63,855 nt of DNA from Salpingoeca rosetta (GCA_033442325.1 JAWQFM010000001.1:2838882-2902736); one strand, 5' to 3'. Numbered from the stretch's first letter, positions 13,579 through 18,549 are shown. Made by a program: numbers and translations. The notes: generated by a model from the letters alone, not told the origin.

Positions 13579-16500
13579 ATGGAGGCGCACACGGATAGGG
13601 ATGCAAGCTGCTGCAACACCATCACGGAAGCGCTGGCAGCGCTGCGGCAGGGAAAGCCCGTCGTGGTGATGGACGACCTTGACCGCGAGAATGAGGCATG
13701 TCGTGTGAACTGTGCTTTTGGTGTGTGTGTGTGTGTATGTGTGTGTGTGTGTGTGTGTGTATGTGGGAGGGGTGTTGCTTGCGTTTGCTCTGTACAACGC
13801 ACACACACGCGCACACGTATACACACGCACACGCGCACGCACACACACACACACACAAACACGCACACACACAAACACACACGCGTGCTCTTCTCTTCTG
13901 GTGTTCTTACATTTCACATTCGTTGTCCTCCTCTTTCTCCTCCCTCTTCTTCTCCGCAATGCTAGGGAGATTTGGTGGTGGCAGCCGAGTTTGCCACCAA
14001 GGAGTCACTGGCGTTCATGTGCCGTCATTCGTCAGGCCTCCTCTGCGCTCCCATCACCGAGCAGAGGTGTGTGTATGTGTGTGTGTGTGTGCGAGAGAGA
14101 GAGAGAGAGAGATTGGTGCATGCACTCAAACGACTCCACGTACGCTTTCCGGTTGGGAAACACCGCGTAGCGCACTCTCACTGGCACGCGCACACGCACA
14201 CACACACACACACACACACACACACACACACACACACACACGCACATACACACACACACACACGCTGAAACGCACATGCACATACACACACGCTGAAACG
14301 CACATACACACACATACACACACGCTCAAACATACACACCCACGTATCAAAACATCCCTGCCCCCTTAATAAAACACCACGATAGGGCGCGGGAGCTTGA
14401 CCTGGCGCCGATGGTGACAACCAATACGGACCGCAACAGCACCGCATTCACCGTGTCCATCGACGTACTGGAGGGAACAACGACTGGCGCATCTGCTGGG
14501 GACAGGGCCCTGACGGCCCGCGCGCTCACCAGCGCCTCCGCTACCCCAGCCTCGTTCTCACGACCCGGGCACCTCTTCCCGCTCGTCGCACGCGATGGTG
14601 GCGTGCTCGTGCGCAACGGCCACACAGAGGCATCGGTGGATCTGTGCCGCTTGGCAGGGCTGCAACCGGCGGCAGTCATCGCAGAGCTCATGCACCCATG
14701 TGGTGACATGATGCGCTTCGATGCCTGCAGGCAGTTTGCAAGCACCCACGACCTCCCCATCATCACCATCGCCGACCTTCAGGTGTACGTGCGTGACCAG
14801 CAGCAACAGCGCCAATATGAGGAGGCTACGGAGAAGCAGGAGCCTGGCCACACTGCTCTCAACACCAACCTTCCAGACTCCGTCCTCGTCAAGGTGTGTG
14901 TGTGTGTGTGTGTGTGTGTGTGTATGCGTGAAAATGTGTGTGCGAGAAAGCGTGGTCGTGATTCATGCGTACATGTACATGCGTGGGCCAGCCCACACAA
15001 TCCTGCGTATCCCATCTCGGCGTTCTCAGTGCCATGCTTTTCCATTGCGTTGCATGCAACAGCTTGTGGCAGAGTGTGAGCTACCGCTGGACTTGTCTGC
15101 AGCCGTCGTGGCGCCAGACACGACATCGCATGATGCACACGCAACTGCCTCGCAGTTCACATGCAAAGTGCGTACATGCACTCGTGTGTGTGTGTGTGTG
15201 TGTGTGTGTGCGCGCGCGTGTGTGTGTGTGTGTGTGTGTGTGTGTGCGTGTGTGTGTGTGTTGCGGTTTGGTTGCTGCATTTGAAGCTCGGGTTTGCTCT
15301 GCCATTTTGCTTCCCTTTATTTGTTCTCGCAACTGATTGTGCGGTACGACGATTCTCTCTTCAATGCACACGACACAGGTGTACCGAGAAGTGGGCACAG
15401 ACCTTGAACACGTTGCTCTTGTCAAAGGCGACATCGCCAACAAGCCGTAAGCAACCCACATGTGCGCTGTGCTTGTGTGTGTGTGTGTACGTGTACGTGT
15501 ACGTGTGTGTATGTGTGCGTCTGTCTGCCCCCATCGCACACATGCACACACACACATATGCACACACATACACACACTCTCTCTTCACATTTCCTGCTTT
15601 GCGTGGTGCATTGCTTCCTTCAATGTCTTTTTCGCTCATGAGCTCAACAACGCACACCCACATAATCTTTTTCCCATTCGTATCTAACCCACCCCCTCCC
15701 ACCCCACGTGCGTGCATGCATGAACGCACACGCCCATTGTCATTGTTAAGGGACGTCTTGACACGTGTGCACTCGGTGTGCTTGACAGGCGACGTGTTCC
15801 ACAGCCTGCGCTGCGACTGTGGGCCCCAACTGCAGGCGGCACTTGCACAGATCGATACTGCTGGGTGTGGGGTGCTGGTTTACATGCGTGGGCACGAAGG
15901 TCGCGGCATTGGTCTTGGCAACAAGATCAAGGCCTACGCCCAGCAGCAGCAACATCGCCTCGACACGTACCAGGTATGCATCTACTGTGCCCTGTCTGAC
16001 ATGAGAGCGGTTGTGTGTGTGTGTGTGTGTGTGTGTGTGTGTGTGTGTGTGTGTGTGTGTGTGTGTGTGTGTGTGTGTGTGTGTGTGTGTGTGTGTGTGT
16101 GTGTGTGTGTGTGTGTGGGTGGGTGGGTGTGGGTGGGTGTGGGTGGGTGTGGGTGGGTGTGTAGGTGTGTGTGTGCGTGTACGCTACGGAGATGATAGTT
16201 TCGTCGACGATGTGGGGATCTTCGATGCTCATGTCTCAACACACACACACACTCACTCACCCATTGACATACACACACATGCCATTTGCTGCGTTTCAGG
16301 CGAACGAGTCGCTTGGATTTCCGTCGGATCTGCGCACGTACGAGATTGCCGACGCAATTCTGCACAGCCTCCGCCCAGCCAGCGTGTGCCTGCTTACCAA
16401 CAACCCACTCAAGCCCACCGCCCTGGCTCGCGTGCGTGTGTCACACGTCAAACAGCTGCGGCTCGCGCCGTCTCTGACCAGCGCCGCGTACGTGCTGGCA

Positions 16501-18549
16501 AAGCACAAGCGCGAGCAAGAGATTGCCACTGCTTTGCGCAGTACAGTCGTTGGTGGCAGCGCTGGGGACCTTGCGGCCATTGTCGCAGACGACAACTGCA
16601 AAGACACACGCAACAATGACGGCAGCAGCAGCAGCAACAACAACAACAACAATAGCAGCGGCAACAGATGTGTGGTTGACGAGGACCATCTGCACGATAG
16701 CAGCCGCGGCTCTACAGCATCTCCCAACACCAACGCTTCGTCCCCCACGCCAGCAAGCACACCCGTTGCATCGATTGGCGGTGATGTCAGCGGCGTTGCA
16801 GTGACAGTGTCCAGCGCAGTCACCAACGCAAGCTGCTTCTCCAACGCCAACAACGTTACCACGAGCAGCATCGACACCACCACCACCACCACCACCACCA
16901 CCACCAGCGGCAGCAGCAAGGGGTTGCTCGCGTCATCGCCGGCATTGGAGCTGCCGCCACATGTCCTGGATTGCCTGCAAGCAAACGCGACGCAAGTGCC
17001 AGCGGCCGTTGACGAGCTGTTCATGCGGCGCGCGCTGTCCCTGGCGCGGCTGGGCCGTGTGAGCGCGCCGCCAAACCCTTGGGTTGGCTGCGTGCTTGTT
17101 CGCGACGGCCACGTCATCGGCGAGGGCTACCACCGGCGCGCTGGCATGCCGCATGCCGAGATTGAGGCCATGGCCGACGCCGTGCTGCGTGCAGGCATCG
17201 ACATCATGGAGCACGGTGGCGCCGCTGCTGCTCTCGCTGACACGCCGTTTGCGGCCTTTGCCAACACGGCTGCCGCCCAGACGCACAGACTGCTGCAGCG
17301 GGGCAAGAGCAAGCGTGCTGCGAGTGAGGCCAAGTCCACCACTGCGAAGACCCCAAGCGCATGCACGTTGACCACTGCTACGGGTGTGGTGGAAGCGGTG
17401 CGAGCTGTACTAGCTGGCGCCACGGCGTACGTCACGCTGGAGCCCTGCCACCACCAGGGGCGCACGGGCCCATGCGACCAAGCCCTTGTGCAGGCCGGCG
17501 TTGCACGCACGGTGATTGCGGTCACGGATCCCGACGAGCGGGTGTCTGCGCGTGGGCTGGCGTTTCTGCGCTCGCGTGGCGTAGAGGTTGCCACGGGCGT
17601 GTGTGGGGCGGAGGCGGAGGCGCTCTTGGCGCCGTACCTACACCAGCGGCGCACGGGCCGACCCTTGTGCGTCATCAAGACTGCGATCAGCATCGACGGG
17701 CGCGTGGCGTGCAAGGACGCCACCTCCAAGTGGATTACGGGGCCGCTCGCTCGCGCGCGCGCACACAAGATGCGGGCGGAGTCGCAGGCGGTGTTGTGTG
17801 GCATCGGCACGGCGCTTGCCGACAACCCAACTCTCAATGTGAGGCTTGCGCTGGCCTCGCTCCCGCCCGGAGAGCGCGCTGCGTTTGCACCTGCCATGCA
17901 TGCAGCTTCACCGTCGCCCGTGACTGTCGCTGGCGCGGGTGCACACTTCGGAAGGGGGATGCCGCTTGTACGGGTGGTGCTGGATGCAAGGGGCCGCTTG
18001 TTCGAGGGCCGCCTCCTTGACACGTCCATTGCGCCCACCATTGTGTACACGAGCCGCGACTGCTCTGCACAGGCGCTCAAGACCTGGGCCGCGCATGGGG
18101 TGGAGGCTGTGGTCGTTGACACAGCTTGTGCCAGTGGTTACGCTGGCGCTTGTAGGGGCGTTGACACTCGTGTTGGCGGTGACGCTGCGGCGCCAGTGCT
18201 GCTGGATCTGATGCAGGTGCTGCGCGACTTGGCCAAGCGCGGTGTGCTGCAAGTGCTTGTGGAAGGCGGCGCGCAGGTGCACTCGTCGTTTGTGCAGCAG
18301 GGGTTGGGCGACCAGCTTGCGGTGTTTGTGGGGCCGAAGCTGCTTGGCGGCACAGCTGTGCCCTGGCTCCCTGACGAGCTGGCATCCACCATGGCACACG
18401 CGCGCACCTACTCGCTTGTGCGCGTGGAGACGTTTGCTGCCGCTGCACGTCAACAACAGGGCGACGGCACCGACAGCAGCGAACACAAACAGGGCAAGGA
18501 GGTGTCCACGGGTGGCGACATTCTCTGCGTGTATCGCAAGGCTGATTGA
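13579..18549 (+). CDS. ribBA-ribD: Multifunctional riboflavin biosynthesis fusion: DHBP synthase (RibB) - GTP cyclohydrolase II (RibA) - pyrimidine deaminase/reductase (RibD), ~1123 aa
   Basis: Exons 13579-13695, 13966-14066, 14386-14893, 15063-15167, 15379-15446, 15751-15973 and 16300-18549 total 3372 nt in frame. RibB motifs: [36 protein letters not shown]. RibA motifs: [10 protein letters not shown]...[25 protein letters not shown]. RibD motifs: [51 protein letters not shown]. Confidence 0.95.
16012..16180 (+). repeat. (TG)n microsatellite, representative of dozens of intronic (TG)n/(CA)n tracts
   Basis: Directly visible. Similar tracts at about 5048-5130, 8473-8560, 22886-22975, 26832-26939, 29204-29321, 35245-35339, 41659-41738 and 55103-55183. 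Confidence 0.95.

Follow-up and report, generated by a model that had tools for sequence, protein, structure and literature searches.

The locus described here raises the question of whether a close relative of animals carries four catalytic activities of riboflavin synthesis in a single gene, and whether that gene yields a single protein. The gene lies on the + strand at positions 13579-18549 of a 63,855-nucleotide stretch of DNA (GCA_033442325.1 JAWQFM010000001.1:2838882-2902736), referred to below as the window, from whose first letter all positions are counted. A preliminary description, made without knowledge of the origin of the DNA, had proposed a fusion of RibB, RibA and both RibD activities in a 'probable holozoan'. 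The holozoan assignment was right, as the source is the choanoflagellate Salpingoeca rosetta (genome of 55.4 Mb in 68 contigs). Choanoflagellates are the closest relatives of animals; animals themselves lack riboflavin synthesis, and its enzymes are considered drug targets. At the level of both gene and RNA, the fusion is genuine, and its product is probably a single cytosolic polypeptide. With a probability of about 0.8, the locus is a genuine nuclear gene giving one mRNA and one cytosolic, tethered, four-domain polypeptide of ~1123 amino acids (aa), which supplies a second, RibE-RibH, protein.

Structure and transcription of the gene

The gene was rebuilt by hand from the three forward reading frames and the splice-site sequences. 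Seven exons were spliced in frame into a 3372-nucleotide coding sequence for 1123 aa with a single, terminal stop, in exact agreement with the preliminary description. The order of domains from the N- to the C-terminus is 3,4-dihydroxy-2-butanone 4-phosphate (DHBP) synthase (RibB), GTP cyclohydrolase II (RibA), a linker, RibD deaminase and RibD reductase. Exon 7, of 2250 nucleotides, is free of stops from RibA through the linker into RibD. The features are as follows (AF2, AlphaFold2; pLDDT, predicted local distance difference test; HMM, hidden Markov model; UTR, untranslated region).

Exon 1, 13579-13695, + strand: start codon (first ATG after an in-frame stop) and RibB N-terminus ending ...DRENE; Pfam profile 2-24; GC donor (gcatgt)
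Exon 2, 13966-14066, + strand: RibB, beginning GDLVVAAE; Pfam DHBP_synthase 25-57; AG acceptor and GT donor
Exon 3, 14386-14893, + strand: remaining RibB with GHTEA and the start of the RibB-RibA spacer; Pfam DHBP_synthase 59-191, E 1.4e-53
Exon 4, 15063-15167, + strand: first strand region of RibA (LVAECELPL...FTCK), placed by homology; missing in the NCBI model
Exon 5, 15379-15446, + strand: RibA; in-frame AG and GTAAG sites; aligns to the RibBA HMM
Exon 6, 15751-15973, + strand: RibA catalytic core with the zinc cysteines (HSVCLTGD...RCDCG); Pfam GTP_cyclohydro2 39-110, E 9.4e-30
Exon 7, C-terminal part of RibA, 16300-16524, + strand: residues 375-449; Pfam GTP_cyclohydro2 112-159; AF2 pLDDT mostly 60-89
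Exon 7, linker, 16525-16977, + strand: residues 450-600; rich in S, T, N and A, predicted to be disordered, specific to S. rosetta
Exon 7, RibD deaminase, 16993-17622, + strand: HAE and PC...PC zinc motifs; Pfam dCMP_cyt_deam_1, E 3.7e-17
Insert in the RibD deaminase, 17170-17391, + strand: ~74 aa, lineage-specific
Exon 7, RibD reductase (RibD_C), 17623-18447, + strand: Pfam E 1.9e-40; two short low-confidence inserts; pLDDT mostly above 85
Exon 7, C-terminal tail and TGA stop, 18448-18549 (stop 18547-18549), + strand: RNA coverage extends to at least 18750, the 3' UTR

All four domains exceeded the Pfam gathering cut-offs on the full protein. The Pfam coordinates abut across the exon junctions (DHBP_synthase 2-24, 25-57 and 59-191 in exons 1-3; GTP_cyclohydro2 39-110 in exon 6 and 112-159 in exon 7), a continuity that is far beyond chance. 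The translation of the last exon was 100% identical to the NCBI/UniProt entry 'riboflavin biosynthesis protein RibA [Salpingoeca rosetta]' (P0001, 1091 aa); all four Pfam families (PF00926, PF00925, PF00383 and PF01872) are assigned to this entry. The introns are packed with GT/CA microsatellites in the style of S. rosetta, and these are the cause of the spurious 'CVCVCV' and 'HTHTHT' open reading frames (ORFs) in the window.

The rebuilt gene differs from the NCBI model P0001, which adds ACR after DRENE and omits the 35 aa of exon 4. In intron 1, the GC donor (GAG/gcatgt) joins exons 1 and 2 into DRENEGD, whereas the nearest GT donor, 9 nucleotides downstream, adds ACR (13696-13704), as in the NCBI model. 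The RibB motif is therefore intact with the GC donor only, and it is uninterrupted in all the homologues aligned. The exon 4 segment, ...FTCKVYR in S. rosetta, has counterparts in Choanoeca flexa (LTAECLLPMD...FRMRTYR) and in the environmental relative P0005 (LSATCDLPVQ...FQMHVFR); an alternative in-frame acceptor at 15030 would add 11 aa. Exons 4 and 5 are individually too short for Pfam matches and are backed by the alignment and by a comparison of scores against an HMM built from 61 two-domain RibBA proteins, which gave 530.7 bits for the rebuilt model versus 519.3 bits for the NCBI model. On this homology, we favour a model in which intron 1 is of the GC-AG kind and exon 4 is included. The four-domain content is the same under any of the three refinements (GC donor, exon 4, exon 4 acceptor).

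RNA from four runs of four studies was mapped on the region 16120-18750 only, from the end of intron 6, which holds a 106-nucleotide (GT)n tract at 16012-16117, to the 3' UTR. In the stranded run X21, with the first mate nearly always on the minus strand, the depth was zero over intron 6 (16120-16295) and 6-43x in each bin from 16296 to 18750, the bins of the linker having depths of 7.3, 10.9, 31.7, 20.4, 15.0 and 13.4. At 16297, 10 raw reads and one contig from each of X4, X6 and X12 had loose ends with the sequence ...CATCGCCTCGACACGTAC. As this is the end of exon 6, the 15973^16300 junction is confirmed, and it is supported by all four studies. Small piles of molecule starts occurred only at 16404, 18302 and 18720, and no cluster of starts or ends was seen within the linker in the mapped RNA, where the preliminary description had envisaged that two separate genes would reveal themselves. 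Contigs stopped only at 16610-16666 and 16863-16921, which are low-complexity runs of asparagine and threonine codons skipped by read mapping. One contig from 2011 extends 1152 nucleotides upstream of 16297, which fits exons 1-6 (1122 nucleotides) plus a short 5' UTR and does not tell the gene models apart. The earlier reading of RibA, linker and RibD as open through one exon was thus upheld by the absence of a stop and by unbroken RNA coverage, and because no stop separates RibA from RibD, any mRNA that encodes RibA must encode the fusion.

Five fixed differences were found between the window and the RNA runs of 2023-2026 (X21, X4 and X6), at 16464, 17175, 17207, 18139 and 18156. The contigs of the 2011 run agree with the window at the four sites that they cover (all but 16464). 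Two of the differences are synonymous, and the others (M677T, Y988D and R993S) all fall within lineage-specific inserts. They look like divergence between strains or culture lines, or differences in assembly.

Function of the fusion and alternative readings

The protein is pictured as beads on a string, made up of RibB, RibA, a disordered linker and a RibD of the bacterial and plant type. RibA would convert GTP to a diaminopyrimidine ribosyl phosphate, from which the RibD deaminase and then the reductase would form 5-amino-6-ribitylamino-uracil 5'-phosphate. RibB would form 3,4-dihydroxy-2-butanone 4-phosphate from ribulose 5-phosphate. After dephosphorylation by a phosphatase, the products of both branches would feed a riboflavin synthase-lumazine synthase fusion to give riboflavin. 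One gene would thus cover both branches that lead to lumazine synthase, as had been proposed.

The remaining two enzymes were looked for in the genome, as the preliminary description had suggested, and were found fused to each other. Contig C22:314300-315580 (+ strand; L003 844-2589) carries two PF00677 domains and one PF00885 domain in one open frame. This 581-aa ORF has one in-frame microsatellite intron and a Q/S-rich linker joining riboflavin synthase to lumazine synthase; its NCBI entry is a 479-aa 'riboflavin synthase' (P0352). In a six-frame Pfam search of the whole genome, the fusion gene gave the sole matches to PF00925, PF00926 and PF01872, and neither a second RibD_C nor a separate fungal-type RIB7/RIB2 route was found. 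Two S. rosetta genes, RibB-RibA-RibD and RibE-RibH, therefore carry the six riboflavin catalytic domains. The RibD half matched the E. coli and B. subtilis RibD structures, in which the deaminase also precedes the reductase, at E 4.5e-61 to 1.1e-58; fungal and archaeal reductases matched far more weakly (6p8c, 2.3e-12; 2azn, 2.5e-11). The assignment of this RibD to the bacterial and plant kind, rather than to fungal RIB7/RIB2, was therefore sound.

The fusion may serve to fix co-expression of the enzymes at 1:1 and to co-localise them, the organism having no operons. Substrate channelling, which the preliminary description had suggested, is not supported. As Henry et al. (2016, PMC4921024) note, the intermediate of RibD is reactive, and it is disputed whether fusion leads to channelling. 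Some points weigh against the tethered enzyme as described here. Fusion as such has not been demonstrated to yield channelling (Henry et al. 2016, PMC4921024). The long disordered linker leaves room for post-translational cleavage. Neither a long read nor a single contig spans the whole mRNA, the Logan contigs breaking at the two runs within the linker, and it is homology that supports the GC donor of intron 1 and the presence of exon 4.

If the linker were cut, one chain would be translated and processed into an ordinary RibBA and an ordinary RibD, and the fusion would serve co-expression only. The composition of the linker (151 aa, with 28 S, 21 T, 16 N and 16 A) and its predicted disorder would suit such a polyprotein. 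In an AlphaFold2 model of the exon-7 product, pLDDT was below 50 at residues 83-232, which are the linker, and mostly 85-98 in RibD outside four lineage-specific inserts. Neither the length nor the sequence of the linker is conserved in C. flexa or P0005; the RibA-RibD junction is only ~20-40 aa in C. flexa (P0007), P0005 and P0024, which do not have the long linker of S. rosetta. However, relatives that retain the fusion with such short junctions fit a tethered enzyme at least as well. No protease motif was noticed, no search aimed at one having been made. We consider cleavage unlikely, though it is the alternative that fares best.

It is less probable still that one domain is a remnant and the protein not truly tetrafunctional. 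One activity has been lost from each of the plant proteins RIBA2 and RIBA3, and the fusions of acanthoecid choanoflagellates without RibA indicate that domains can be dispensable. In S. rosetta, V replaces E before the first zinc cysteine of RibA, and RibA, the deaminase and the reductase all carry inserts. Nevertheless, every metal-ligand and substrate motif checked was intact. For RibB (PF00926; 262 bits versus a cut-off of 26.4, profile 2-191 of 191, on P0001), GHTEASVDL of S. rosetta aligned to GHTEATVDL of PDB 4ffj and 1g57, which exon 3 matched at E 3e-42 and 1.5e-37, respectively; from the structures of E. coli and M. jannaschii RibB, (D)RENEGD is the acidic metal/substrate motif and GHTEA the histidine motif. 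In RibA (PF00925; 176.5 bits versus a cut-off of 23.3), the three zinc-ligand cysteines (HSVCLTGD...RCDCG) are kept and aligned to HSECLTGDALFSLRCDCG of E. coli RibA 2bz0, and also to M. tuberculosis RibBA 4i14; we take them to be the equivalents of E. coli C54, C65 and C67. The zinc motifs of the deaminase, HAE (PHAEIEAM) and EPCxHxGRTxPC, aligned to E. coli RibD, and H285, A286, E287, P382, C383, C392 and K460 were invariant columns in an alignment of 20 sequences. In the reductase (PF01872; 139 bits versus a cut-off of 24.1), the lysine aligns to the K of LKLGASLDG in E. coli; K151 of B. subtilis RibG is said, in work of Chen et al. from 2009, to select the deaminated substrate. The genome has no other copy of these domains, while the downstream RibE-RibH gene has been retained. 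All four predicted catalytic domains thus have intact motifs, and each is probably active. The earlier claim of one gene and one frame for RibB, RibA and both RibD domains was upheld.

A recent acquisition of the RibD half or of the whole gene from bacteria, for example Chlamydiae, or bacterial contamination, might be suggested by the single intron-free exon holding RibD and by the ~50% identity to E. coli RibD in conserved blocks. This exon, however, starts with the C-terminus of RibA and is spliced to exon 6, and the locus lies on a contig of more than 2.7 Mb with eukaryotic genes around it. Trees were built for RibD (121 rows) and RibBA (99 rows), in which Chlamydiae were not specifically sampled, so that an ancient transfer would be compatible with them. 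The RibD tree placed S. rosetta in a eukaryote/virus half, split with a support of 96 from the other half, whose 58 rows are mostly stand-alone RibD and include the named bacterial sequences. Splicing and genomic context led us to reject contamination of the assembly, and a recent bacterial origin is as improbable as a dead domain.

The least probable alternative, that a promoter or polyadenylation site in the linker gives separate RibBA and RibD mRNAs, could appeal to the uneven RNA depth (6-17x at 16296-16647 versus up to ~43x in RibD) and to the contig breaks in the linker, but the depth never fell to zero, no start or end pile was present there, the breaks coincide exactly with the skipped N-run and T-run repeats, the lack of a stop after RibA makes its mRNA read on into RibD, and a C. 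flexa Trinity transcript holds all four domains.

Upstream of the gene, an opposite-strand low-complexity ORF (9037-13374, - strand; 1445 aa, rich in H, R, S and D) ends ~200 bp before the ATG of the riboflavin gene. The interval 13375-13578 may be a divergent promoter region common to both.

Riboflavin fusions in other organisms

An exhaustive HMMER search was performed with the full S. rosetta protein against 1.84 billion representatives. Among the best 150 matches were several dozen cluster representatives of ~900-1350 aa that matched in three or more stretches. Domains were mapped on 352 fetched proteins with the S. rosetta domains as phmmer queries. A word-index search also yielded many multi-domain relatives, for which Pfam provided the order of domains. 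The architectures among the 352 proteins included the following.

RibE-RibD-RibB-RibA-RibH: 29 proteins
RibE-RibD-RibB-RibA: 7 proteins
RibD-RibB-RibA: 6 proteins, including several Enemella evansiae strains (753 aa) and the uncultured choanoflagellate UC1
RibB-RibA-RibD: 7 proteins, two rows being S. rosetta (rebuilt and NCBI models)
RibA-RibD, N-truncated: 7 proteins
RibB-RibD: 4 proteins
RibB-RibA-RibH: 57 proteins
RibE-RibB-RibA: 46 proteins
RibE-RibD: 11 proteins

Among choanoflagellates, the 881-aa protein of C. flexa (EP00730_P017066, P0007), from a Trinity transcript, has RibB-RibA-RibD with a short linker. The acanthoecids Helgoeca nana (P0010) and Diaphanoeca grandis (P0011), as well as P0015, have a RibB-RibD fusion without a RibA domain. 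The RibE-RibH fusion is also present in Choanoeca perplexa, Stephanoeca diplocostata, Savillea parva and Didymoeca costata, and in the transcriptome of Telonema subtile. Monosiga brevicollis was absent from the matches, no search of its genome itself having been made. The single-cell genome of Craspedida sp. UC1 gave a 1175-aa RibD-RibB-RibA protein (P0034), which groups with amoebozoan and virus-like sequences in both trees, apart from S. rosetta; a separate origin is possible, as is foreign DNA in the amplified genome.

Elsewhere, RibB-RibA-RibH was found in Arcella, Stereomyxa and Physarum, and RibE-RibD in Difflugia and Euglena longa. A six-domain chain, comprising every dedicated riboflavin enzyme except the phosphatase, is carried by the ~1100-aa Indivirus ILV1 protein P0083 (named 'deoxycytidylate deaminase'), by P0028, P0030, P0035, P0057 and P0063, and by others. 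Its order is the one that would arise if the RibB-RibA-RibH gene of Amoebozoa were placed directly behind their RibE-RibD gene. In bacteria, the cultured actinobacterium Enemella evansiae has RibD-RibB-RibA (WP_094428317, 753 aa), and P0065, from a bacterial metagenome-assembled genome, has RibB-RibA-RibD (731 aa).

Riboflavin fusions are also annotated in animal assemblies, namely RibB-RibA-RibD in the nematode Aphelenchoides avenae (KAH7718681.1, P0024; 810 aa) and RibE-RibD in the locust Schistocerca gregaria (XP_049852213.1, P0027), and also P0119. The RibD parts of the nematode and locust fusions are sisters with a support of 99, nested among amoebozoan-like sequences. These fusions could result from horizontal transfer or from contamination by a eukaryotic associate.

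In the RibD tree, S. rosetta belonged to a group of 11 (Shimodaira-Hasegawa-like approximate likelihood ratio test, SH-aLRT, 89) with C. flexa, P0005 and environmental RibB-RibA-RibD or RibA-RibD fragments. In the RibBA tree, S. rosetta and C. flexa were paired with a support of 97, their neighbours being P0005 and the acanthoecid RibB-RibD clade. Close neighbours of S. rosetta in both trees were limited to C. flexa, the acanthoecid RibB-RibD proteins and environmental relatives such as P0005. The choanoflagellate RibB-RibA-RibD and RibB-RibD groups did not form one clade in a free, quick RibD tree; when the 14 choanoflagellate-type rows were held together, the likelihood was better than that of the free tree (approximately unbiased test, p-AU 0.83). 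This is compatible with, and does not prove, one ancestral choanoflagellate fusion from which RibA would have been lost later in acanthoecids. The Aphelenchoides-type RibB-RibA-RibD was nested among amoebozoan-like RibE-RibD and RibB-RibA-RibH sequences, and P0065 among bacterial-type sequences in both trees. Because these two and the S. rosetta type sit apart in the trees, the RibB-RibA-RibD order arose at least three times.

The preliminary description had explained the gene as a bacterial-type operon collapsed into one. The order of the domains, the introns and the placement in the trees led us to reject this. The B. subtilis rib operon has the order ribD(G)-ribE-ribBA-ribH, from which RibB-RibA-RibD differs; spliceosomal introns lie at six of the seven exon boundaries; and the nearest relatives of each half in both trees are choanoflagellate or environmental eukaryote-like sequences, not the sampled bacteria.

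It is possible, at slightly less than even odds, that choanoflagellates as a group make riboflavin with two polyenzymes, RibB-RibA-RibD and RibE-RibH, as an ancestral partition distinct from the amoebozoan and viral ones, and that the pathway has been consolidated repeatedly and independently, in the manner of AROM. If so, nature would offer one-, two- and many-gene versions with which to ask whether tethering protects reactive pyrimidine intermediates, the choanoflagellate, amoebozoan, viral and bacterial fusions forming a natural series of fusion states. For S. rosetta itself, the locus provides a compact, genetically tractable handle, as one knockout removes four steps, and the public gene model is corrected.

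Comparison with known systems

The suggested novelty of the gene stood only in part. Literature searches found neither a description of a RibBA and RibD fusion nor a study of the choanoflagellate enzyme, and fusions of any kind go unmentioned in a 2026 pathway review. However, the protein was already in NCBI/UniProt, automatically annotated with its four Pfam domains, is present in other choanoflagellates and is paralleled elsewhere by the same order and by numerous other fusions. The habit of the pathway is also well known, RibBA and RibD fusions being the rule in bacteria and multi-enzyme chains being common in eukaryotes. Nothing is overturned by the S. rosetta fusion. Of greater interest is the comparison across lineages, in which the pathway is divided between two genes in different ways and takes a one-gene form in viruses; this seems not to have been described.

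In a survey of 983 prokaryotes, 22 riboflavin fusion architectures were counted, with RibB/RibA found 728 times and RibDd/RibDr 785 times, and none linked the two; for RibH and RibE, the share of cases with a fusion was about 0.4-0.5% (Henry et al. 2016, PMC4921024). Orpheovirus has a RibD-type fusion and a RibA, RibB and RibH fusion (ORPV_596 and ORPV_666), for which homology to Indivirus and to Acanthamoeba is noted (Andreani et al. 2018, PMC5786535). In the available part of Erives and Fassler (2015, PMC4339202), riboflavin synthesis is among the functions lost on the animal stem, and the RIB gene names were not found there. Choanoflagellates still possess the pathway.

The N-terminal half of the S. 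rosetta protein resembles the bifunctional RibBA proteins (B. subtilis RibA, M. tuberculosis Rv1415, PDB 4I14, and plant RIBA1), with the same two domains in the same order; matches to 4i14 were E 1.6e-25 for exon 6 alone and 4.5e-35 for exon 3 alone. Unlike these proteins, the S. rosetta chain adds RibD, has a longer spacer between RibB and RibA, and has an insert of ~20 aa, shared with C. flexa, in the first hairpin of RibA. The C-terminal half resembles RibD/RibG (E. coli 2G6V and 2O7P, B. subtilis 2B3Z), in that the deaminase is followed by the reductase and the zinc motifs align, as does the lysine of the reductase, but it sits behind RibBA and has the ~74-aa insert between HAE and PCxxC and two inserts in the reductase.

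The AROM, CAD and FolB-FolK-FolP proteins place pathway steps on one chain in eukaryotes, which lack operons, and their enzymes are unrelated to those of the riboflavin fusion. By analogy, the S. rosetta fusion would likewise put several consecutive or convergent steps on one chain. We know of no eukaryotic tetrafunctional riboflavin enzyme of the AROM or CAD type that has been studied.

The closest parallels are the fusions of C. flexa, Enemella, P0065 and A. avenae, each with the identical four Pfam domains in one chain, although none of them has the long S/T/N linker. In Amoebozoa (Difflugia, Arcella and Physarum) and giant viruses, the pathway is similarly consolidated into one or two chains built from the same domain families. 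The six domains are partitioned differently in each case: RibB-RibA-RibD and RibE-RibH in choanoflagellates, RibE-RibD and RibB-RibA-RibH in Amoebozoa, and all six in one chain in the virus-like proteins.

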